From Prasinococcaceae sp. CCMP 1430 (Eukaryota > Plantae > Prasinodermophyta): a DNA stretch of 64,000 bases. Both the position numbers and the translations under genes were made by a program. The stretch lies in NCBI GenBank assembly GCA_013416795.1, contig RQSC01000001.1, positions 101,378-165,377 of the forward strand, read 5' to 3'. Below, one piece after another: positions 7,567 through 47,582 of the stretch (its first letter is position 1; the number at the start of each line of letters is the position of its first letter). Below the pieces are notes generated by a model. That model saw only the letters and a list, made by a program, of their open reading frames with translations. It was not told where the DNA came from and ran no database searches.

Positions 7567-7644
7567 NNNNNNNNNNNNNNNNNNNNNNNNNNNNNNNNNN
7601 NNNNNNNNNNNNNNNNNNNNNNNNNNNNNNNNNNNNNNNNNNNN

Positions 7645-8492
7645 CGCGGCGCAGCTGCGCGGGATGGGCTTCCCCGTGGGGGGCGGCGGCGGCGGGGCGG
7701 CAGCCGAGTGGGTCGCCACGGCCGCAGCAGCAGCCAGCAGCGGCGGCGGCAGCTGCGACGACGACGCGCTTGCGGCAGCGGCACTCGACTCAGACTTCGG
7801 GGCGGGAGGTGGAGCGGACGGCGCTGACGGTGCGGTCGGCGGCGGCCACGGCGCCGACGCCGGCAACAACATGCTGCCTGCGGGCGTGTCGGGGATGTTG
7901 CAGGGCGTGTTGAGCGTGCGCGTCGTCATGCAGGTGGATGAGGTGGTCGACATCGGCGCTGCCGCACGCGAGCGCTACGTGGGGTGCGACGGCGGCGCGA
8001 CGGGCGGCGCGCCTACGCCCGCCCGCGCTTCGCGCGTGCTGAAGCTGCGGCTCACCGATGGCGCACAGCGCGTGACGGCGGTAGAGTACAAGTGAGAAGC
8101 CGCAGCGACGCGCACAAGCGCGCGCTCATACAAGCGCGTGCGCACGCACTCGCTTCCACTCGCACCGCGTCTTCGCGAGTACGACTGTGTCGTCGAGAGG
8201 GCGCGGGGGAAGGGGGGGAAAGAGAGAGAGGGAAGCTGTCCGGGTGCGGTCGCGAGAGAGGCCGGTACGGACGCCCGTGGTTCGACCGGTATGATGGCGC
8301 GCACGTGCGGCGCGGCTTGCTGCTGCTCACACCAGACGTTGTGCGCGTGCTTGGCGGCCGGGTGAGTTTCCTCGAGGCCGCGCGTGTCGCGGCAGTAGAA
8401 GCGTGGAATGAGCCTGCGCGCGGGCGTGGGGTGCCGCGCGCCGAGAGGGCGAGGCGAGCTGCCGCCAGAGCGATGGGGGCGCCAGCGGGCGC

Positions 8493-8529
<37 letters not shown>

Positions 8530-9222
8530 CAGGAGCAGCAGCAGGAGCAGGAGCAGCAGTACCACCACCACCAGCGAGCGCATCCGCCGACGGAGCTGAC
8601 TGCACCCACGCAGAGGTACACGCAGGGACCGCAGCAACCCCAGCAATATCAGCAGCCACAGCAGCAAATTCGGCAGCAGCAACAGCAGCCATCAGCGCAC
8701 TTCAACACGCAGCAGCAGACGGCGCCGTACAACGCAACCAACACGAGAGATGTGGGGCGGCAGGGTGACGGTGCGGTGACGGTTGCGATGGTGCCCACGG
8801 GCACGTTCGCCTCCCTGGCGCCACCTGCCGTCACCGCGGTGCGCGTGCGCGCCCGCCTGAAGACATCGCATCGGCTGAGCACGAGCAAGGGCATCTACGA
8901 GCTGCGCGTGCTCGCTGAGGACAGCGCGGGCAACGTCACCGAGGCGCTGATCGCCTCTAGCATCATCGAGGAGCACGTGGGCGTGGCGTGCGCTGAGTTT
9001 GACCGCCTCAAGCGCGAGGCGATGGACGAGGCCAAGCGGCGCATCGCGCCGCTCCAGACTTTCTTGCGCGGATTCAAAGGTGCCATGGACGTGCGCGTGT
9101 CGCAGGACCTGCCCGTGCCGCTCATCACACGCATGGCACCGCTGCCCGAACATGAGGCCCCTCGAGGTGACGGCGGAGACGGCGGCCACTCCGACGCAGC
9201 GCACAAGCGCAGGCGCACATGA
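7645..9222 (+). CDS. RMI1: RecQ-mediated genome instability protein 1 (OB1 + polyQ linker + C-terminal OB); 5' in gap; intron 8092-8240 (acceptor visible only after in-place complementation)
   Basis: QVDEVVDIG, LKLRLTDGAQRVTAVEYK and RRGLLLLTPDVVRVLGGRV match the RMI1 N-terminal OB fold; the C-terminal region resembles RMI1_C. Confidence 0.85.
8165..8292. other. Segment complemented in place (not reversed) across the RMI1 intron/exon junction; left edge approximate
   Basis: The base-by-base complement gives GCTGAC (8182-8187), a pyrimidine tract and CAG (8238-8240). It then reads in frame (K)PTPALSPAMPAGTKLAI and joins DGAHVRRG. Confidence 0.9.
8494..8559 (+). repeat. (CAG)n / CAGGAG polyglutamine tract in RMI1 linker
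   Basis: Eleven uninterrupted CAG followed by mixed GAG/CAG units. Confidence 0.95.
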
Positions 9223-9314
9223 GAAGGACGCACATGAGGGCGACAGGCGGAGGACGCGGACAGAGAGTCTGACAATTTTTAATCAATAATGTACAGGAAG
9301 GACTGGTGTCCAGA

Positions 9315-12300
9315 TCACACGATCTCGTAGAGCTTCTTGAGCTTGACGACCAGCCGCCACGACTCCTTGTCCATCTCATCGACGAAATGCTCTTTGAGCA
9401 AGTCGATGCTCTTGCGCGTGATGAGCGACACAAGGTCGTCCGTGTGGTCGAAGTGGCGGCCGTACATGCGCGAGCTCTCGGTGGGGTTGGTGGGCTCGAT
9501 CTTCATGGCGACGCTCTGGCCGCGCGTTGCCCGGTCCACCGCTTTGTGCTCGCGCTCGATGGAGGCGATGCGCCCCAGCGTGATCTGGCCCTGCGACGGC
9601 ACGCAGATGGGCGTGCCGATGCGCGCTATGCCGTCGATGACGTCCACTCCCACCACGATGGGGTCCTTGCGCGTAAAGACACACGAAGGCAGGATGCGCA
9701 GCACGCAGGGGAAGGCCGCGTCACGCAGCGTCTCCTTCTTCTTCTGCGCCTTCACCTCCTTCATGTAGGCCGAAAACTGGTCGAACAGGTGGTAGATGAT
9801 GTCCGCGGTCATGATGCGCACGCCCATCTCCTTTGCCAGCTCGCGCGCGTCCTTCTTCACCTCGATGTCGAACGCCAGGATCACAGCGAACTCCGGCAAG
9901 CCGCGCGTGGCCATCATGCTCGCGCGCATGACGTCCTTCTTCGAGATTGGGCCGATGTTGACGCCGCACACGGGAATCTGCACGTCGTCCGAGCCCAGGA
10001 ACTCCAGAAGTGCCTCCAGCGAGCCAAGCGTCGACGCCTGCACGCACACGCCGTCGGCGGTCTTGTCCACGCCCTCGAGCACGGAGCTCATCTCGTTCTC
10101 GACCGTGTCGCGCAGCTCCTCCTCCGAGTCCTGGGAGCCCAGCACGTACAGCTGCGTGCCCGCGAGCGCGCTCTCCAGGTTGTTGGCCGCGAGCTTGACG
10201 CCGATGGCGCCTTCGATCTGCTTGTGGTGTTGGTAGCTGCCCTTCACGCGCATCTCCTTCATTGGGTGCGGCGTGAGGACGGCGCGCACCTGTGTGACGA
10301 TGGCGCCCTGCAAGCCACACACGAGGTGCCACAGCGGGAGGAACTACGCCGGCAACTGCTCCTACTGCAGTGTCCACCACGGTTCGGGGAGCTACCAGAA
10401 CTGAAGGTCGTGGCATGTGACGTCGCGCCCCCTCATGGTGTCGAAGAGACCAAGCATCTTGTACGTGAGATGCGACAGCATGTAGAGCAGGTCGGGAATG
10501 CCCTCGCCGGTAATAGCCGAGGTAGGCACCACGTTGACATAGCGACGCGAGTCGGGGTTCTCCCAGTACAGCGCAGCGTTGAGGCCCTGCTCGGCCAGCG
10601 CGAGGAAGGCCGCGTCCTTGCGCTTCTCGAACTCGAGCTGTGCGTGCTCCTTCTGGCCCTTGAGGGATTTGCGGAAGGAGCCGTTTGGCACCGCCTCCCA
10701 GTCGAAAATGCGGTCGCACTTGTTGAGCGCGACTACGAAAGGTGTCTTGCGCATCTTGAGCAGGTTGATCGACTCGATGGTCTGCTGCTCGAGGCCATGC
10801 ATGATGTCCACCACCAGCACGGCGATGTCACACAGGCCGCTGCCGCGCGAGCGCAGGTTAGAGAAGCTTTCGTGGCCGGGCGTGTCGATGACCAGCAGGC
10901 CAGGAATCTTGAGCGGTTCGCCCTCGAGGCAATCGGCGGCCTTCTCCTCGAGCGCCTCATGCGGCATGAAGGTAGCGCCGATCTGCTGGGTGATTCCGCC
11001 CGCCTCACCGTCCTGCACGTTGGTGTTGCGGATCTTGTCGAGAATTTTGGTCTTGCCGGTATCGACGTGGCCCAGGATGCAGCAAATGGGCGAGCGCAGG
11101 CGGTCGGCGCTCTTCAGCTTGCGCTGCTTGGCCTCCCGCGCCTCGCGGGCGGCGCGCGCCTCCGCTATCCGCTCCTCGCGTTCCTCCTCACTGTCTGTGC
11201 TGTAGTCGTCGCTGTCGGTGTCGCTGTAGTCATCGTCGCTGTCGCTGTCCGAGTCACTGTCCGAGTCGTCGCTGCCGGAGTCCGAGTCGGAGCCCGAGCC
11301 TGACTCTGAGCCCGATTCGGAGTCGGAGTCTCCCGACGCATCCTCGTCGGAGCCCTCATCTGAGGCCGCCTTGGCCTCCTCCTTGGCCTTCTCAGGCTCC
11401 TCGGGCGCCACGGTTTTGACCTCAGCGGTCTCCCAGTCCTCATCCTCCCAGTCGTCAGCTGCCTCCTCGGCCGCCTTGGCAGCCTCTGCCTCTGCCTCTG
11501 CTTTGGCCTTGGCCTCCGCCTCCGCCTTCGCCTCGGCCTCCTCGGCCTGCTTCTTCTCCTCGGCAGCCTTCTGCGCAGCGGCAATCTCCTCGGGCGACTT
11601 CTTCTTCTTCTTGCCGTACACGACCTTCTTGGGCTTGTCGGCGGCGGCCTCGACCTTGGCGCCCGCCTGTGCGAGCAGCGCCTCGCGCTGAGCGGCGAGT
11701 CGGCGCGCCTCCTCCTTCTGTTTGGCAGTCACAGCCACGCCCGCCTTGCGCTTGGCCTCGAGCTTCTCCTTCTCGCGCTGTTTCTTCGCCAAGCGCTTCT
11801 CCTCCGCCCGGCGCGCCTCCTCAGCTAGGCGCGCCTCCTCGGCCTCGGCGGCGAGGCGAGCCTCTTCCTCGGCGCGCTTGGCGGCCTCCTCGGCCGCCTG
11901 CTGCTTGGCAATGCGCTCGCGCATCTCGAGCACTGCCTTGCTCACCTTCTTCTCGGGCTTCTTGCCACTTGCAGCCGCACCCTCGTCGCCACCCTCAGCC
12001 GCCTTGGCCTTGGCCTCCTTCTCCTTCTGCTTCTTCTTGAGGCGCTTCTTCTGCGCGGCAGTGAGCTCCTTGGGCTCCTCGCTCTCCGCCGGCGCCTCGT
12101 CGCCGGCGCCGGCGTCCGCTTTGGCCGCCTCAGCAGTGCCCCCGGCGGCCTTGTCCTCCGCCTTGGCTTTGTCGTCGAGCTTCACACCATCGAGGTCAGC
12201 GAGCAGCGCATCAATGTCATCATCGTCGGCCTTCTTCGCCTCCTTCTTCTGCTTCTGCTTGAGCTTCTTCTTCTGCGCCTTGGAAAGCTTCGCGGACGGC

Positions 12301-13919
12301 TCGGGCTCCTTGGGGGCATCCAGGCTCGCCAGCAGGGCGTCGAGCTCCGCGTCCTCCTCCTCTTTCTTCGAAGACTTCTTCTTGCTTGACTTGGGCTCGG
12401 GCGTCGGCTCAGGCTCCGGGATCGGCTCGGGCCCAGGCGCCGTTGCCTTCTTGCCCTTCTTGCCTTTCTTTGCAAACACGCTCGACACCGCGGGCGTGTC
12501 CTCCTCGCTGCTGCTGCTGCTTTCAGCCGCCTGGGGAGGAGGGGCGGCCTTCTTTTTGCCTTTCTTGGCGAACACGCTCGCAGGGGCTGGCTCGTCGTCC
12601 TCGCTGCTGCTGCTGTCCGCTTTAGGCGCCGGCGCGCTCTTCTTCTTCTTCTTCTTGGCGAACACACTCGACGCCGCGGGCTTGTCGTCGTCACTGCTGC
12701 TGCTGCTGGTCTCGGCCACGGGCGCCTTCTTGCTCTTCTTCTTGCCGAAGACGGACGGCACCGCCGGCGCCGGCTCGGCCGCGTCCCCGCCCTTCTTCGA
12801 CTTTTTCTTCTTGAGCGCGCTCGCGGGCACGGTGGTGGGAGGTGCGCTGCCCACTTTCGCGTCCTCTGGCAGAATGGTTACGCCCGAGTAGTCGGCGTCC
12901 CAGCCCATCTCCGCGGCGCCGCAGAACATGCCGAAGCTGGCGACCCCCCGCAGATCGACCTTCTCGACGCGCAGGCCGGTGCCCGGCACAGTAGAGCCGA
13001 TGGGCGCGTATATAGTCTTCACGCCCTTCTTGGCATTGCCGGCGCTGGTGACCACCTGAAACCACGTGTCGGGCCCCACGACGGCTTTGCACACGCGCAG
13101 CTTGTCGGCGCCGGGGTGACGCTTGGCGGATGCGATCTCGCACACGACGAGCTTTGGAACGTACACTTCGTCCTCCTCGTCCTCCTCCGACTCCTCCGAC
13201 TCCTCCGACTCGTCGTCGGCGTCGTCGCCCATGAGCGCCGCGAAACCCGACTTGACTGGTGCGGGCTCCTCCTCCGACTCATCTTCCTCGTCGTCGTCGC
13301 CATCGTCGCCCATGAGGGCCGCAAATCCGCTCTTCGCGGGCGGGGCGGCGTCCTCCTCTTCCTCCTCCTCGTCGTCATCGTCGTCGTCATCGCCCATGAG
13401 CGCGGCGAAGCCCGACTTGGCCGCAGGGGGCTCGTCCTCCTCCTCCTCCTCTTCCTCGTCGTCTTCATCGCCATCGCCGCCGAGTGCGCCAAAGCCCGCC
13501 GGGAAGCCGCCCGCCTTAGGCGGAGGCGCCTCCTCCTCCTCCGACTCGGCGTCTTCCATGGCCTCGTCACTGCCATCCCCACCCATCAGTGCCGCGAAGC
13601 CGCCCGCCTGGGCCTTGGCGGGCTCGTCGTCGCTGCTGAAGCCCGCCGCGGCCTTGCCCTTCTTGCCCTTCTTCTTGGCGCGCTTGTCCTTCTTGGCTTG
13701 CGACTTGGACATGACGGGAGCGTCATCCTCCTCGCCGTCGCTGCCTTTGGAGGCGGGCGGCATCGGCACGTCGTCATCGCTGTCGTCGCCACCGCGCCCC
13801 TTCTTCCCCTTCTTGCCCGCCTTCTTCGCCGCGCGCTTCTCCTTGCGCGCCTGCGCCTTGGACTTCTCGGGCGCGCCGTCGCCGTCGCCGTCGCCGCCGC
13901 CGCCGGCGGGCGCGTCCGC
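9315..13919 (-). CDS. eIF5B: Eukaryotic translation initiation factor 5B; start in gap; 42 codons (10326-10451) readable only after in-place complementation
   Basis: G domain [46 protein letters not shown]; domains II-IV ([36 protein letters not shown]); long Lys/Glu/Asp-rich N-terminus. Confidence 0.97.
10326..10451. other. 126-nt segment complemented in place inside eIF5B domain II
   Basis: Reading the + strand backwards without complementing gives [42 protein letters not shown], in frame with both flanks. Confidence 0.97.
12838..13166 (-). other. tRNA-binding OB domain (bacterial PheT B2 / YtpR type) embedded in the eIF5B N-terminal region
   Basis: [23 protein letters not shown]...QVVTSAGN...[32 protein letters not shown] parallels the consensus HPNADKLxVC...GxKIKKxKLRGVxSxGMLCSxxELG. 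Confidence 0.9.
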
Positions 13920-14660
13920 NNNNNNNNNNNNNNNNNNNNNNNNNNNNNNNNNNNNNNNNNNNNNNNNNNNNNNNNNNNNNNNNNNNNNNNNNNNNNNNNN
14001 NNNNNNNNNNNNNNNNNNNNNNNACCGGCCGGCCGCCGCGCGAAACGCGATTTCGCGCCGCGCCGCCCTTTTCGGTCCGGCCTCGGCGCCACCGCCCTTT
14101 TTCCGCCGACCGCGCGTTTCGTCCGCCGTTCCGCCGAACGAAACAACCAATAATCAATCGCCCAGCCCAGGGTGGGTGGGTGGGTGCTCACCGACCGAGA
14201 GAAAGACAGAAGGGAGGGTGGGGGTGAGAGCCACCCACAGCCGGCCGCCGCACGCGATCCCAGCCAATTTCTCCGTTCCTTCCTTCCGCTTTCCCGCAGC
14301 CGATCGAGGCTCTTCGCCGTGCCCTCGGTCGACCGGCCGTGGCTGGCTGGCTGGCTGGGAGGAGATCTCGTCGTGCTTTCTTGCTTGACAGACAGACACA
14401 TCTTCCTCTGACTCTGCAGAGGCTGTGGCGCGGCGAGATCGCCGCCGCCGCCAGGGCAAGGAGTGGCCGGAGCTCCCCTGCTGCAGCAGCAGGAGCGGAT
14501 GGCAGCGGGCGAAGGGCCGTCATCAGGCCAGCAGGGGCCTCAGCACCCCCATCCAGCGGGATCGCGTATCAAACAAGGAGCAGCGTGCATGGAGTACTAC
14601 GACGGGACTACACTTCAGTGGCGTGGTGCACTGGCATGTCATTGGCTAGGGCTTGGATGG

Positions 14661-20016: not shown

Positions 20017-23000
20017 ATGGCGCGCGCCGCCCATCCCTTCATGGCGGTGATCCTCGTGCGCCCCGCAGCGCGCGCGCCTGAGAGGACACAGGCGGGCACT
20101 CATCGCAGCGACAGCAGCAGCCTCGAGAGGAGGAGGCGGAGGAGGGGGGGGCGCAGCAGCAGGGCGCCACCGCGCGGCAGGTGGCTGGCGAGGCTGGTGG
20201 CGAGGCTGTTCGCGCTGATGTGCGCAGTGACGGCCCTTGTAGCCATGCCCCGTGCCCTCGCGCAGGCGAACGGCACCGGTGCGGAGCAACCCGCCCCCGC
20301 GCCCGCTCTCGCGCCTGTGCCAGCCCCGGGACCAGCACCCTTGCCTGCGCCAGCGCCCTCGTCGGGCCCGAGGCCCGCAGACGACAGCGACGGCGGAGGA
20401 CAAGGGACGGCTGCAGAACCACAGCCAGCTCCTGCCCCCGAGCCAGCACATCAGTCGGCTGGGGACGAAGAACATGGAAATGAGAATGGAGGCAACGCCG
20501 CAATGCCTCCTGTGCCTGCGCCTGGCCCTGCCGTGCCGGCATCGGGGCCGGCGCCTGCACAAGGACCGGCGCCTGCACAAGGACCGGCGCCTGCACAAGG
20601 ACCGGCGCCTGCACAAGGACCGGCGCCTGCACAAGGACCGGCGCCTGCACAAGGACCGGCGCCTGCACAAGGACCGGCGCCTGCACCGGGGCCTGGCCCT
20701 GCACAAGGACCGGCGCCTGCACAAGGACCGGCGCCTGCACAAGGACCGGCGCCTGCACAGGGACCTGCGCCTGCACCGGGGCCTGGCCCTGCCACAACGC
20801 CGCCGGCGCCGGCACCACGGCCGGCCCCCGAAGAGCCAGCGACGCCCGCGCCGGCGCCCGGTGCGGCTCCAGGACCTGCACCTGGTCCTGCGACGGACGA
20901 AGGCGTCGACATCGAGGTCACATACGAGCTGCCCCAGCCGGCGCCTGCCCCAGAACCGGGTGTGCCAACGCCCGCTGCTGCCGAACCGGCGCCCGGGCCG
21001 GCGCCTGGGCCCGCACCTCGGCCAGGCTACGAGTACGCCTACGGCGACGACGGCTTGGACGTGGAATTGGCAGCGCCAGAGCCGGCGCCCGCGCCCAAGC
21101 CAATGCCCGAGCCTTCACCCAAGCCCGCGCCCGCGCCCGCACCCGAGCCTTCGCCCGCGCCCAAGCCGGCGCCACTCACGCCGCCGCCTGCGCCGCCGCC
21201 GCCGCCCGACATCGCGGCCGTGCCCCGGTGGGACGGCGAGAGCGTCGTAGGTGCCGACCAGGCCGTGGTGGAGTTCAACGTGGACATGGGATGCGCGGGG
21301 CTCAACTTTACAGAGGTGTGGGTCACTGGCGCCTTCTGTGAGTGGTGCAGCCCGTACGGTGGTCCCTACGGTGGTGCCCTTCAGCTATTCAAGACAGGCG
21401 AGGACGCCAGCAGCGCCATCTTCTCGGGCAGCTTCGTCTTCGACGCTGACTCCATGAGCCTCAATGACGATGGCGAGCCGGCGGTGTTCTACAGGTATCT
21501 CGCTGACGGCTGGCAGCAACCCGAAGCACTCAACGCAATCGGCGGCGGCGGCAGCAGCGTCGAGATCGCTGGCAGCACCGTTGGGCCCACCAAGCGCCAG
21601 CAAGAGCAAACAGAGCAGTTTCCGACATCGGCGGCCGTCACCGAATGCCCATCGACGTCTGGCTCGGCCATATTCCCGCACAGGTCGGCGCTCGTTCAGT
21701 TCGCCGACAGCGTAAGCACGTCGGACACCTTCGGACGCTGTGCGCCTTGCGGCGACGACGGAGGGGCGGGGCCGCAGGTGCCCTCGCCCCCACCGCCGCC
21801 GTCAACTCCCCCCCCAACAAGCCCGCCTACCAGCTCACCCACAGTCGGCAGCAACAGTAGCAACGGTAGTAGCCCAGGCGGCAACAGCAGCAGCGGCGGG
21901 GGCACCGATCCCCCCATTGTGTACTACGAGGACGACGAGGCCCTGCCAGGCGCACCGATCGCTTCACCGACCGACGCGAGCGTGCAGCACCCGCACCCTC
22001 CTCCGAGCCCCCCGCTGCCGCCCGGCGATGGCGGCAGCTCCTCGGGCGTGCTGATTGGCGCAATCGCTGGCGCCGTCGCCGCAGTCGTTGCATTGGTCGG
22101 CGTCCTCGCGGCAGTGTTCGTGAGCAGGCGGCGCGCGCGCGCGCGCATGCTGGATGGTGCTGTTCCAGACATTGAGACTGGCGGTGGCAACGGTGCGCAC
22201 AGCAGCGGCGGCGGTGGCGCTCCGGTGACGCAGGGCAGGAGCCCCAAAGCAACGAAGTCGAGCCACCACACGCAGACCGGCGAAGGCATGAGCAGCGCGA
22301 AGGGCGCCAAAAACCACAGCAGGAGCGACGACAACAGCAGGCATCTCGGAGCAATGGTGGGCAGCTTCCTCAGCGGCCTTCTCGGCAGGAGCAAGGGCGA
22401 CGACGCCTTCCATTCCGCGGGCGAGATCACGCTGGGCAGTCGCGTGCTTGATATCCCCAACCACAAGATTGGCCCAGGCTCGCCCGGCGGTCACGGCGTG
22501 AGCCCGCGACCGCTCCGTCGCCATTGGGCCATCGACTACTCGCAGCTCGACTTCGGCGAGGGTGAGCCACGGCGGCTGGGACGTGGCGCGTACGGCGAAG
22601 TCCTGTGCGCGCGCCTCAACGGCACGCGCGTCGCTGTCAAGCGCTATCACATGTGGGAGCACGAGGAGCTCGTGGGGCTCTCGGACGACCCCGCGCAGCC
22701 CCATCACCACAGCGGCGCCGAAGGGAGGGATCTCAGCAGCGCCGCTGCGGGGCAAGGGGCCTCGGTGTCTCTGAGCGCGCAGGGGGAGCGCGGCAGCACG
22801 CAGCGCGACGGGAGTCCAGGCGAGGCGGTGCGCGAAGTGGAGCCGTCGTTCGCCTTCGAGGAACTCCACGCCGATGCGATGCAAGCGCGCGCGGAGGAGC
22901 GCCACGTGGCTGACGTTCGCGCCTTCGAGCAGGAGATGGAAACGCTGGCGCGGTTGCGCCATCCGAACATAGTCATGTTCATCGGGGCGTGCGTGGCGCC

Positions 23001-36117: not shown

Positions 36118-36517
36118 GCCAAAAGCAGATCAGAGACGTCGTTTGCATTCGTTGCCCAGCAACAGCACTGCTCTAGTGCGTGCCAACGTTTGGCGAGTCG
36201 CGGCGGCGGATCTCCCTTTTAGGATGGGTCGTGACCGGCACTGAACTGAAAAAGTTTTCTCTCTCTACACGTCTGTGCGTACACAGATGAGGCCGGAAGT
36301 GTCCGGGGGTAGTGGCTAGTGGCAGTGGTACGGTGGTACGCAATAGTAGCTAGCATTTTCCTCTAGACACGCCCGGCCGCGTCGCAACCCAGTCTCTTGC
36401 CTGTCCCTCGTTCCATCCATGGCGCGAAGGGCGTGTGGCGCTGAGCGGGCGATACGCCCCGCCCGCTCGGCTGCCTGCCCTCCGCCTGCCCTCTCCAACA
36501 CTGCGCCCTTGCGTCGA

Positions 36518-38694: not shown

Positions 38695-38820
38695 CTCCCT
38701 CGCCGCCAGTGGTCCGCCGCCGGCGCTCGCCCCTCGGGCGCTCACGAACGGGCCGCGCCCGCTGACTTTTTCGCCCTTTTTTTTCGACGGACGGCGCAGA
38801 TACCGATCGCCGCGTCGCTC
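38695..38820. other. Probable third in-place complemented segment covering the RPN3 start codon; left edge not determinable
   Basis: In-frame TACCGATCGCCGCGTCGC at 38801-38818 complements to ATG GCT AGC GGC GCA GCG (MASGAA), which runs into SLRAAAALV. No other ATG lies in the intergenic space. Confidence 0.6.
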
Positions 38821-40423
38821 GCTGCGCGCCGCCGCCGCGCTCGTGCGGCGCTCGATCGCCGCCAAGGAGGCGTTCCTCGTGCAGCGCGCGCTGCGCGCGA
38901 CCGCCGCGGCGAGGCGCAAGGGGCTGCTCAAGGAGGACGAGGTGGGGGCGTTCGCGGGGAAGGCCATCGGCGACGGATCGCCGCTGAAGGCCTCGCTCGA
39001 CGCCGCGCTGCCGCAGGTGAGCGCCGCGGCGCTCCCCGCGTGCCCCCGTTGGCGCGCACGCGCTTGCGCGCGCGAATAGATCCTGCCGCGAAAGATCTCC
39101 GCTCGCGCGCGCCAGCGCAGCCGGCCGCGCGACCGCCCGTGCCCTTCGCCGTGGCCGTGCCCTAGCCCATGCCTGCGCCCGTACCCACCCCTGCCAGCAT
39201 GCAGCGCTCGTGAGATCTGACGGAGCGCGCGCCACCAGGGGGATGCGTCCATGGGCGAGGATGGCGGTGAGGCCGCCGAGGCCGCCGAGCCCGCCGAGGC
39301 GCTGCCCGAGGTCGACGCGTACGTCGCGCTGTGCGGCGTGACCGCGCTGATCGACGCGGGCAAGGTCGAGCAGGCGCGCTCGCTGGTGACGGACGTGGTG
39401 CAGTGGCTGCAATCATCGGTGAATCGGCGCACGATGGACGTGCTCGCTTCCCGCCTGTACTTCTACTACAGCCTCGCGCACGAGAAGCTGGGCCGCCTCG
39501 CTGAGATCCGGCCGACGCTGCTCGCGTTGCATCGCTCCGCCGCGGTGCGGCACGACGAGTCGGGCCAGGAGATGCTGGTCAACCTGCTGCTGCGCAACTA
39601 CCTGCACTACTCGCTCTACGACCAAGCGGAGAAGCTGCGCGCGCAGGTGGAGCAGGGGAGCGGCGGCCAGGGCAGCAACCAGCAGCTCTGTCGCTACATG
39701 TTCTACATGGGGCGCGTGCGCGCGGTCGCGCTCGAGTACTCCGAGGCGAAGGAGTGCCTACAGCAGGCGCTGCGCAAGGCGCCGCAGGCAGGCGCGCTCG
39801 GCTTCCGCGCGGCATGCAATAAGTGGCTGGTGGTGGTGCAGCTGCTGCTGGGCGAGGTGCCCGAGCGCTCCGTCTTCCGCCAGGAGGGGCTGCAGGCGGC
39901 GCTCGAGCCCTACTACCGCCTGGCGTTCGCCGTGCGCCAGGGCGACGTGCAGGAGTTCGAGGCCGCCGCGGCGGCCAACGTGCGCGTCTTCCAGCGCGAT
40001 CGCGTGCACAACCTCATCGTGCGACTGCACCGCACCGTGCTGCGCACGGGCCTGCGCAACCTCAGCCTGGCGTACTCGCGCATCTCCATTGCGGACGCCG
40101 CGGCCAAGCTTGGCCTCTCCGACGCCGACGCGGAAGACGCCGAGTTCATTGTCGCAAAGGTGATCCGCGACGGCGGCATCGACGCGCGCATCGATCGCGC
40201 GACGGGCACGATTATCAGCAGCGAAACGGCGGGCGTGTACGACACCGCCGAGCCCCAGGCGGCTTTCCACAGCCGCATCGCCTTCTGCCTCAACCTCCAC
40301 AACGACGCAGTCAAGGCGATGCGCTATCCGCCCGACGCCTACAAGGCAAAGCTCAAGGAGCTCGAGAGCCGCAATATGCTCGACATGAGCGAGCTCGAGG
40401 ACGAGCTCGACGACGATTTCTGA
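38801..40423 (+). CDS. RPN3: 26S proteasome non-ATPase regulatory subunit 3 (PCI domain); intron 39017-39238
   Basis: NRRTMDVLASRLYFYYS, NLLLRNYLHYSLYDQAEKL, SNQQLCRYMFYMGR, LAYSRISIAD, EPQAAFHSRIAFCLNLHNDAVKAMRYP. Confidence 0.97.
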
Positions 40424-44059: not shown

Positions 44060-45820
44060 CGTCGCCGATCTATACACACCCCGGGACACCCTCGGCCTCC
44101 GCCTGCGCCAGGCGGGAGCGGAGGAAGGGGGGGTGTCGGGGGGGGGGGGCCACACCCGCTGCGCCTCTGGCGCGCGCTGTGGCGGCCGCCGCTCCAAAGC
44201 TCCGGAACCCCAATCGCACATCCCCCGCATAACACCCCAAAACGGAATCCACATCATCCATATAAATACATTAATAGAACTGCTTTGGATTCCATATGGG
44301 TTTTGGGTTCCATCCGTGGGTGCGCGCGCCGCAGCGCGGCCTCGCGCGCGGAGCGCGCGCGCGCGCGCGCTCCGCGGGTTCGCTCCGCGCTCATTTTCGG
44401 CCTGAAAACGGGCGAAAAATGCGCCGTTTAAAAAAGATGGTCATCATAGTGCATGGATATTGTCCCCCGTCCCGCGCCTCGCCCCCCGCCAAAAAGCCGC
44501 ACCAAAACCGGCAAAAAAAAACGAAAGGGCGGAGACGCCGAACGAATCCGAATCGATCCGTTTTTTTTCGATCCGGTGGCTCCCACCCTGCCGCCGCCAG
44601 CCGCCGCCCGGCCGCTGCGCTGCCCCCGTCGATGCCTTTTGACGCGCCGCGCCAAAGGCGCGCGACCTCGGTCCGTTTTGACATAATCAAGAAAACCTGA
44701 TTTTATACCGTAAACATCAAAATCCTGTGTCTGTACCGTGATGGTACGCGTGCACGTCGTGCAACCGCACTTTTGTATGTATGTGTGTGTGTATATCATT
44801 CCTGGACTCTAACCCAAACCTCGCAGCCTCGATGACCTATGGACGCGAAAAAAAAATCCATTTTTCTTTTGAAAAGGAAAAAAGATCTTTTCTTTTGACG
44901 TTATCTTTTTCTTTTTCTTTTTCTTTTGACGTGTTTTGTGAGGCTTTTTTCCGCTCCGACGAGCGTCCGCACGACAGGCACGCCACTCCCTGGTGCATTG
45001 TACTACGAAGTTGAGTAAAACCTGATATTTTACCCTAAATACCAATGTTTGTGTTTGGCGTCCCAAAACTCGCTCGGGAGTTCCTGGCGACCCACCGCCC
45101 GGAATACCCGGATTTCCGCGCACAGCGTGCGCGGGAACACGGCCCGGATGGCGCCGCAAGCCTCCCACAGATCCGCGCGGCGAGACCGAGCCGCTTCCGC
45201 AGCGACGTACGGGGGTGCCGGGTCCCAGCCCCGGTTGGGACCTCCCGGATGTGTTGGGGCTGACTGCGTTGTACGCTGATATTCTCATTCCAATTCCGGA
45301 CTGCTACCGGTCTAACCCAACCCAAAGCTCTGCCACCTCGATGCGAACCCCAAAGCGCAGCGAAATAAAATATCGCACTCGTCTTTTCCCCCCCCCCCTT
45401 CGTTTCGCGGAGCGGCGCGCGCGTTCGCGCGCGTCCCGCGGGATCGGCCGGGGCGGCGCGGCGCGCGGCGCCGACCACGTCGAGTGACGTCCTCCAATCG
45501 CCACGATGCGCGTCACGTCATGAGCGTTTTCGAATGCTATCTGACCTCTATCTCATTCATGTCACTTTCAAATTCAAGATGACTTATTGGAGATGTTTGA
45601 TATACAAGTTTAACCCTATATGTGTTTGGGTTGTAACCTCAAAGGGGTAGATTTCGGGACCGCGGTTTGGCGGGGTCTGCTGCGGTGCGCCACAGCGCGC
45701 GCGCGGCGGCGCACCTCGCGGCGGGCCGCCCCCTCGGCGCTCCCCCTTCCCGACCGCTTCCCCGCTCCGTCCCTTGCCGCGGGGGCGTGCCGTGCGAGGC
45801 GAGGGCGCGCGCTGGGACAT

Positions 45821-46194
45821 AATTTAAATTAATTCATTGAATTATAAACAACTTGCTCATTTTCTTGTTGAACAACATTATCAATTAAACCATATTGACG
45901 AGCATCAGCTGCTGATAAATAACGGTCACGGTCCATATCACGAGCTACAACTGCTAGTGATTGCCCTGTACGTTTTGCATATAGACGACCTACTTGTTGA
46001 CGTAAACGTAATACTTCTAAGGCTTCTAACTTTACATTACTTGCTTGCCCTTGTGAACCACCTAATGGCTGGTGAATCATAATACGTGCATGTTGTAGGG
46101 CAATACGTTGACCTAATGTTCCACCAACTAATACAAAGGAAGCCATTGAAGAAGCACAACCAACACAAATGGTTGTAACATTTGCTTGAATATG
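45821..46194 (-). pseudogene. clpP: 3' half of a chloroplast-type clpP gene inserted in nuclear DNA (NUPT or chimeric join)
   Basis: About 37% GC by hand count against very GC-rich flanks. Reads [22 protein letters not shown]...ARIMIHQP...RDMDRDRYLSA...YGLID with stop at 45829-45831; plastid-like codons (CGT, TTA, CAA). Confidence 0.93.
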
Positions 46195-47582
46195 TTCCGG
46201 CGGCCGCGCCCGCGCGGCTCGCGCGGCTCGCCGCGCCGTTCTCCGCGGCGCCCGTCGCCGACTTCTCCGGGCTGCTCTCGACGATCGCCGCCAAGGTGCC
46301 GGAGGAGCGCGAGAAGCTGCGGGCGCTCAAGGCCGAGCTCGGCGACAAGGTCCTGGGCGAGGTGACGCTCAACATGGCCATCGGTGGCATGCGCGGCGTC
46401 AAGGGCATGATCTGGGAGACGTCGCTGCTGGACGAGGCGGAGGGCATCCGCTTCCGCGGCCACACCATTGAGGACCTGCAGAAGTCGCTGCCGACCGCCA
46501 TCGAGGGCGGAGAGCCCATGCCGGAGGGCCTGCTGTGGCTCCTGCTCACCGGCGACATCCCGACCGCCGAGCAGGCCGACAGCCTGCGGGCGGAGCTCGC
46601 GGCGCGCGCGCTGCGCCAGGAGGGCCTGGTGCGCGACATGCTGGAGAAGTACCCCATCAAGACGATGCACCCCATGACGCAGCTCTCCACGCGCGTGCTG
46701 GCGCTCCAGCCGCGCAGCGCCTTCGCGGCGGCGTACGCGAGCGGCAGCGTGCACAAGACCGAGCTGTGGCGGCAGATCTACGAGGACGCGCTCGACCTGA
46801 TCGCCGTGCTGCCCATGGTCGCGGGCCACATCTACCGCGAGTCGTCGGGCAAGAGCGACATCGGCTGGGTGCGCCACGACGTCGGCCTCGACTGGTCGGC
46901 CAACTACGCGCGCATGATGGGCTACGAGTCGCCCGAGTTCGACGAGCTCCTGCGCCTGTACCTCACCATCCACGCCGACCACGAGGGCGGCTGCGTGAGC
47001 GCGCACACCACGCGGCTGGTGGGATCGGCGCTCTCCGACCCCTACCTGTCGTACGCCGCGGGCATGAACGGCCTCGCGGGACCGCTGCACGGCCTCGCCA
47101 ACCAGGAGGTGCTGCTGTGGCTGCGCTCCGTGCAGGCGGAGCTGGGCGCCAACCCCACCAAGGAGCAGCTCACCGACTTCGTGTGGGCGACGCTGAAGTC
47201 AGGCAAGGTCGTGCCGGGCTACGGCCACGCGGTCCTCCGCAAGACCGACCCGCGCTACACGTGCCAGCGCGAGTTCGCGCTGAAGCACCTGCCGGACGAC
47301 GAGGGCTTCAAGCTGGTGTCGGCGCTGTACGAGGTGGTGCCCAAGGTGCTCGCGGAGACCGGCAAGGTGAAGAACCCCTGGCCCAACGTGGACGCGCACT
47401 CGGGCGTGCTGCTGCAGCACTACGGCATGACCGAGGCCGACTACTACACGGTGCTCTTCGGCGTGTCGCGCGCGCAGGGCGTGCTGGCGCAGCTCGTGTG
47501 GGACCGCGCGCTCGGCCTGCCCATCGAGCGGCTCAAGTCGCTCACCATGGACGCCGCCAGGGCGCAGCTCGGCGGTCAGTAG
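46192..47582 (+). CDS. CS: Mitochondrial-type citrate synthase; candidate ATG 46192 is one base out of frame with the body
   Basis: [73 protein letters not shown]. Confidence 0.95.

Follow-up and report, generated by a model that had tools for sequence, protein, structure and literature searches.

The plus strand of the window (the whole stretch of 64,000 nucleotides of DNA that was analysed) carries an RMI1 gene, as a first-pass annotation made from the sequence alone had proposed. The Pfam domains RMI1_N_C (PF08585) and RMI1_C (PF16099) are both found above their curated cut-offs. RMI1 is RecQ-mediated genome instability protein 1, the protein of the human structures 3NBI and 4CGY, and from its membership in this family the encoded protein is predicted to bind topoisomerase III alpha and a RecQ helicase. 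The features of the gene and of a second affected gene about 2 kb away, encoding eIF5B, are as follows.

7646-8091, plus strand: upstream exon of RMI1, recognised by Pfam RMI1_N_C, its 5' end lost in the N run 7567-7644
8092-8240, plus strand: 149-nt RMI1 intron with a donor, GTGAG (8092-8096), that is legible as deposited and a 3' half that is legible only after complementing
about 8165-8292, no strand assigned: probable block in which the bases are complemented but not reversed, indicated by a gain of about 40 bits against the family HMM and by a 4-mer orientation statistic
8183-8187, plus strand: branch-point-like CTGAC, present only after complementing (deposited letters GACTG)
8188-8240, plus strand: pyrimidine tract and CAG acceptor after complementing (deposited as a purine tract ending in GTC)
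8241-8292, plus strand: final base of the Lys codon divided by the intron, followed by 17 codons (PTPALSPAMPAGTKLAI), readable only as the complement
8293-9222, plus strand: remaining RMI1 coding sequence as deposited, in which OB-fold 1 ends and a poly-Gln linker and RMI1_C follow, from the ORF listing and Pfam
10326-10451, no strand assigned: complemented block of 126–128 nt in the minus-strand eIF5B gene, with 42 codons of domain II and three in-frame stops as deposited

The open frame leaving the N gap 7567-7644 on the plus strand runs through 8091 and ends in ...RVLKLRLTDGAQRVTAVEYK, with its final Lys codon split after AA; the letters in front of the donor are ...GTA GAG TAC AA, followed by GT at 8092. 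This exon alone matches RMI1_N_C with 27.8 bits (cut-off 23) over profile positions 4-93 of 146. From 8293 a second open frame, displaced by one base, reads DGAHVRRGLLLLTPDVVRVLGGRVSFLEAARVAAVEAW... and continues to a stop at 9220-9222. As deposited, this downstream part covers RMI1_N_C positions 113-142, and residues 182-286 of the 8293-9219 translation (about 8836-9150) form the RMI1_C OB-fold with 33.4 bits (cut-off 27). The two frames differ (position mod 3 is 2 upstream and 1 downstream), which calls for an intron or a shift between them. Positions 94-113 of RMI1_N_C, about 20 in total, are left uncovered by the deposited letters and map between 8092 and 8292, which agrees with the earlier claim that the conserved xPxPxLxxxxPxGTK segment of the OB fold is missing there. 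At the other end of the gene the N run 7567-7644 takes out the 5' coding part, where the start presumably lay along with some of the N-terminal helical domain, and the N-terminus truncated by this gap shows by eye a weak likeness to that of a metagenomic relative (P0001, see below). A scan of 7600-9400 against Rfam found no RNA family.

All intron calls used here, those in the window including RPN3 as well as those in the relative, were derived from reading frames and not from transcripts. In the deposited letters the region 8181-8240 is 77% purine and ends in ...GCTGTC. It had been described as a purine tract with no usable acceptor; the purine tract is there, but in-frame AGs do exist, with exon starts at 8223, 8229 and 8259. 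These acceptors lie within the purine tract and their products reach 69–70 bits against an HMM of the RMI1 family. When 8165-8292 is complemented without reversal, ...GCGCTCATGCTGACACAGCAGC is followed by a pyrimidine tract and then by TTCGACAG/G CCC ACG ... GCC ATA (the slash marks the start of the exon), so that a branch-point-like CTGAC, a pyrimidine tract and the acceptor CAG/G all appear, as the first-pass annotation had stated. In the complemented intron CTGAC stands 52 nt upstream of CAG/G. The same motif is found about 20 nt upstream of the CAG acceptor in an RPN3 intron of the same window, and CTGAC followed by CAG/G is also present in two introns of the RMI1 gene of the relative.

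The complemented codons read G CCC ACG CCA GCG CTC TCT CCG GCC ATG CCT GCG GGC ACC AAG CTG GCC ATA. They join in frame to GAT GGC GCG CAC at 8293, giving AVEYKPTPALSPAMPAGTKLAIDGAHVRRGLLLL, and both the arithmetic and the coordinates given earlier for the acceptor and these 17 codons proved correct. RMI1_N_C is covered continuously, including positions 94-113 (the strand region with PxPxL...PxGTK), only after 8241-8292 has been complemented in place. The 17 codons close the gap in the domain without insertion or deletion, and the register is kept across both junctions in the alignment to the relative and in the family HMM. Human RMI1 (PDB 4CGY, 3NBI) bears the xPxPxLxxxxPxGTK motif at the aligned place, and the relative P0001, which comes from JGI metagenomes (loci L001 and L002), reads LTDGARRVVGFEHAALPWLRHDTPAGAKVAVTHAHVRRGLLLLTP and aligns to the complemented window protein without a gap. 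The claim that complementing brings back the missing RMI1 segment is thus borne out by P0001, the family HMM, Pfam and human RMI1 alike, with the in-place complement being the only reading that fills the gap. Using the domain of P0001 as query, an exhaustive search collected 279 members of the RMI1 family. All of them share at most about 50% identity with the window protein, and hence none of the 279 stems from this genome.

In order to quantify the gain we used a family HMM built from 154 independent rows of the RMI1 homologue alignment, all passing E <= 1e-8. The complemented version scores 108.6–110.4 bits, compared to 67.9 bits for the deposited letters spliced at the same acceptor and 66.7 bits if the segment is skipped; the corrected peptide, aligned to the RMI1 domain, therefore beats the deposited one by about 40 bits. 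Reversing the segment gave 72.5 bits and its reverse complement 69.1 bits. Among all 31 frame-keeping GT/GC..AG introns on the deposited letters the best reached 70.4 bits. When 3000 random 52-mers, taken from the window with all four orientations allowed, were put at the same spot, they scored 75.7 +/- 3.8 bits with a maximum of 91.2, which places the observed 110.4 bits about nine standard deviations above the random inserts, with none of the 3000 coming within 19 bits. The 34-residue peptide across the complemented codons is by itself recognised by Pfam as RMI1_N_C positions 90-123 (30.5 bits, E = 3.5e-7) and matches no other family.

These numbers bear directly on the idea that the deposited letters are genuine, in which case RMI1 would be degenerate or oddly spliced and the match of the complement a product of chance. 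The in-frame AGs mentioned above do permit a spliced open reading frame, but such splice models stay at 69–70 bits against 110 for the complement, a value that all 3000 random inserts miss by more than 19 bits. Moreover, chance would have to create a branch motif together with a pyrimidine tract and a CAG at once, and eIF5B would likewise keep three in-frame stops. We find this explanation hardly credible. A true chromosomal rearrangement of the segment, such as an inversion, is the least probable origin of all that we considered. Nothing beyond the local break of the gene speaks for it; an inversion yields the reverse complement, which shows no gain over the deposited text, and the known DNA transactions do not yield a same-direction complement. 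In addition, the correct-sense sequence of 8241-8292 is absent elsewhere in the window on both strands, allowing up to 3 mismatches (<=3). An in-place complement is the reading that accounts for the RMI1 segment.

A second block of the same kind lies in the eIF5B gene on the minus strand, which is split as deposited into two ORFs at 10322-10392. Complementing 10326-10451 turns 39 deposited residues into 42, exactly 42 codons in register, and four eIF5B proteins from green algae then align with scores higher by about 170–186 points. As eIF5B is an essential gene, it is implausible that the genome itself carries a copy interrupted by three stops in domain II. The closest relatives of the window eIF5B in the protein collection are from trebouxiophyte and other green algae, the best being 76% identical. 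Apart from the block, the gene carries an embedded tRNA-binding domain (10392-14150, minus strand). This domain (PF01588) is also seen in many green-algal eIF5B relatives, namely from Trebouxia, Myrmecia, Elliptochloris, Botryococcus, Volvox, Auxenochlorella and Parachlorella, and being so common it is a lineage-wide feature and not specific to this genome.

Support that needs no protein homology came from a k-mer orientation statistic. Strand-symmetric Markov models were trained on the window and each 127-nt tile was compared with its own complemented form, where under a strand-symmetric model the same-direction complement is equivalent to the reversed sequence. With the order-4 model the tile 8165-8291, corresponding to the RMI1 block, ranks second and the tile 10325-10451, corresponding to the eIF5B block, third of about 64,000 tiles. 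False positives occur in A+T-richer untranslated regions, and the k-mer statistic is for this reason used as supporting evidence only.

The right edge of the RMI1 block can be placed at 8291-8293. The codon 8290-8292 must encode a hydrophobic residue, which is ATT if the edge is at 8291 and ATA if it is at 8292. Since ATT is used 25 times and ATA 3 times in the training genes of the window, codon usage makes 8291 somewhat more likely than 8292, with 8293 being possible as well. The right edge of about 8292 given by the first-pass annotation thus falls inside the range, but it is not the position that codon usage prefers. Its placement of the left edge within the intron, at a point that cannot be fixed exactly, fits the k-mer likelihood, which puts this edge within 8127-8186 at 2 bits; the strand-symmetric Markov estimate has a resolution of +/- 20–40 nt. 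With CTGAC as the branch site, the left edge would have to fall between the donor and 8183 (<=8183). It would be at 8164-8167 if the RMI1 block equals the eIF5B block (126–128 nt) in size, in agreement with the start at 8165 in the first-pass annotation. A fixed block size or a 16-, 60- or 128-base grid was also considered, and the coordinate arithmetic gave nothing consistent.

Taken from the sequence, these results make it very probable that about 127 bases, from around 8165 to 8291/8292, hold the complement of the plus strand written in the same direction, and that this is an error of sequence handling and not biology. The true RMI1 sequence follows here from homology and splice signals and was not observed in reads. 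We know of no DNA transaction that makes a same-direction complement. We infer that the error arose during assembly or finishing, and the faulty step is inferred likewise: a minus-strand read or patch could have been reversed and left uncomplemented during consensus calling, gap closure or finishing, or else the consensus step could have complemented reverse-strand reads that were already kept in forward orientation. The real gene would then consist of the exon ending in ...AVEYK, the 149-nt intron with GTGAG, CTGAC, pyrimidine tract and CAG, and the following PTPALSPAMPAGTKLAI-DGAHVRRGLLLL..., which would complete the N-terminal OB fold. The sequence evidence supports the view that the RMI1 of this organism is an ordinary, intact gene once the block is read as complement. 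The window has about 69% G+C and contains ten N runs of 1–473 nt, which measure 48–473 nt apart from one single-N run. Blocks in perfect register and sized like the remaining N gaps would fit patched gaps or a thin coverage by single reads.

The error might also have been introduced after the public deposit, in a copied sequence, because a file was corrupted or the letters were deliberately altered as a test. Two blocks of very similar inferred size within one 64-kb window (126–128 nt in eIF5B and a compatible length in RMI1), both in perfect register and free of insertions and deletions, would suit such an alteration, and the protein collection holds no protein of this genome for a comparison with the public record. 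The draft is, on the other hand, so rich in gaps, with its ten N runs, that errors of patching are plausible, and we regard a change after deposit as unlikely. In the same collection neither an RMI1 nor an eIF5B gene model or transcript-derived protein from this genome was found. DNA of the same species was also sought in metagenomes for the true intron and the left edge, where 600 pattern matches yielded none that was confirmed. Our literature search found nothing describing assembly errors by complement without reversal or internal blocks of this type.

A technical origin of another kind would be a decoding error in colour space (SOLiD-type), where a miscalled colour leaves the decoded bases exchanged according to one of three fixed letter swaps. 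Complementation is among these swaps and preserves the G+C content, as is the case here. The other two, A<->C with G<->T and A<->G with C<->T, were looked for throughout the window, but only stretches rich in A+T by nature stood out, and colour-space decoding is in our opinion a very improbable source. It is exceedingly improbable that the DNA of the alga physically contains these same-direction complements through an unknown process, leaving RMI1 and eIF5B truly disrupted or unconventionally decoded. A mishandled strand in assembly or finishing is the explanation that we prefer.

Compared with human RMI1 and the green-algal relatives, the complemented window encodes a continuous N-terminal OB fold, LTDG...EY.P.P.L....P.GTK...G....RGLLLL......VLGG, that aligns ungapped and is followed by RMI1_C. 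Within the RMI1 family the window protein itself would be unexceptional, with a linker rich in poly-Gln between both OB folds; it differs in that its N-terminal helical part is cut short by an N gap and that 17 codons of OB fold 1 are illegible as deposited. The RMI1 block resembles strand-handling errors in sequence records in being an exact in-register transform that keeps G+C content, length and the flanking frames and that recurs in eIF5B. Unlike such errors, which concern whole records, the blocks described here are internal, roughly 100 nt long and located within scaffolds. With inversions or misoriented draft contigs they share the local break of a gene in a gap-rich draft, but those are reverse complements, and in the window the reverse complement restores nothing (69 vs 109 bits).

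Complemented blocks preserve both G+C content and length, and ordinary quality checks will miss them for this reason. They still wreck reading frames, start codons and splice sites, and gene models, orthology tables and calls of 'gene loss' or 'pseudogene' derived from the assembly would be wrong at such places. With two blocks, in RMI1 and eIF5B, verified at the level of sequence in a 64-kb window from the draft of a GC-rich green alga, the RMI1 anomaly would be a matter of annotation and data quality only. It is worth reporting to the curators of the assembly together with that in eIF5B, while its scientific interest is low.

The k-mer orientation statistic points to a cheap screen for further blocks, albeit one with false positives and one that misses a candidate in RPN3. 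When 38695-38821 is complemented, it reads ATG GCT AGC... and provides an open N-terminus for an RPN3-like gene, so that a third complemented block is plausible there from the sequence; the k-mer orientation gives no support for this candidate (z about 0). The top-ranked tile of the order-4 scan, ahead of the RMI1 and eIF5B blocks, is the non-coding 36288-36414 with 15.8 bits, which could be a further complemented block or else a false positive caused by its composition. A codon-usage scan for further complemented coding blocks in the window recovered the eIF5B block only, its false positives being the poly-Gln tract at 8500-8615 and a Pro-rich repeat at 20.5–20.9 kb. In the latter region a plus-strand ORF contains a tandem Pro/Ala-rich repeat (20560-20830) of GPAPAQ units with an 18-nt period. 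The window also includes an A+T-rich island at 45500-46200, which has 35–40% G+C within a sequence of 69% G+C and is conspicuous in every composition scan.
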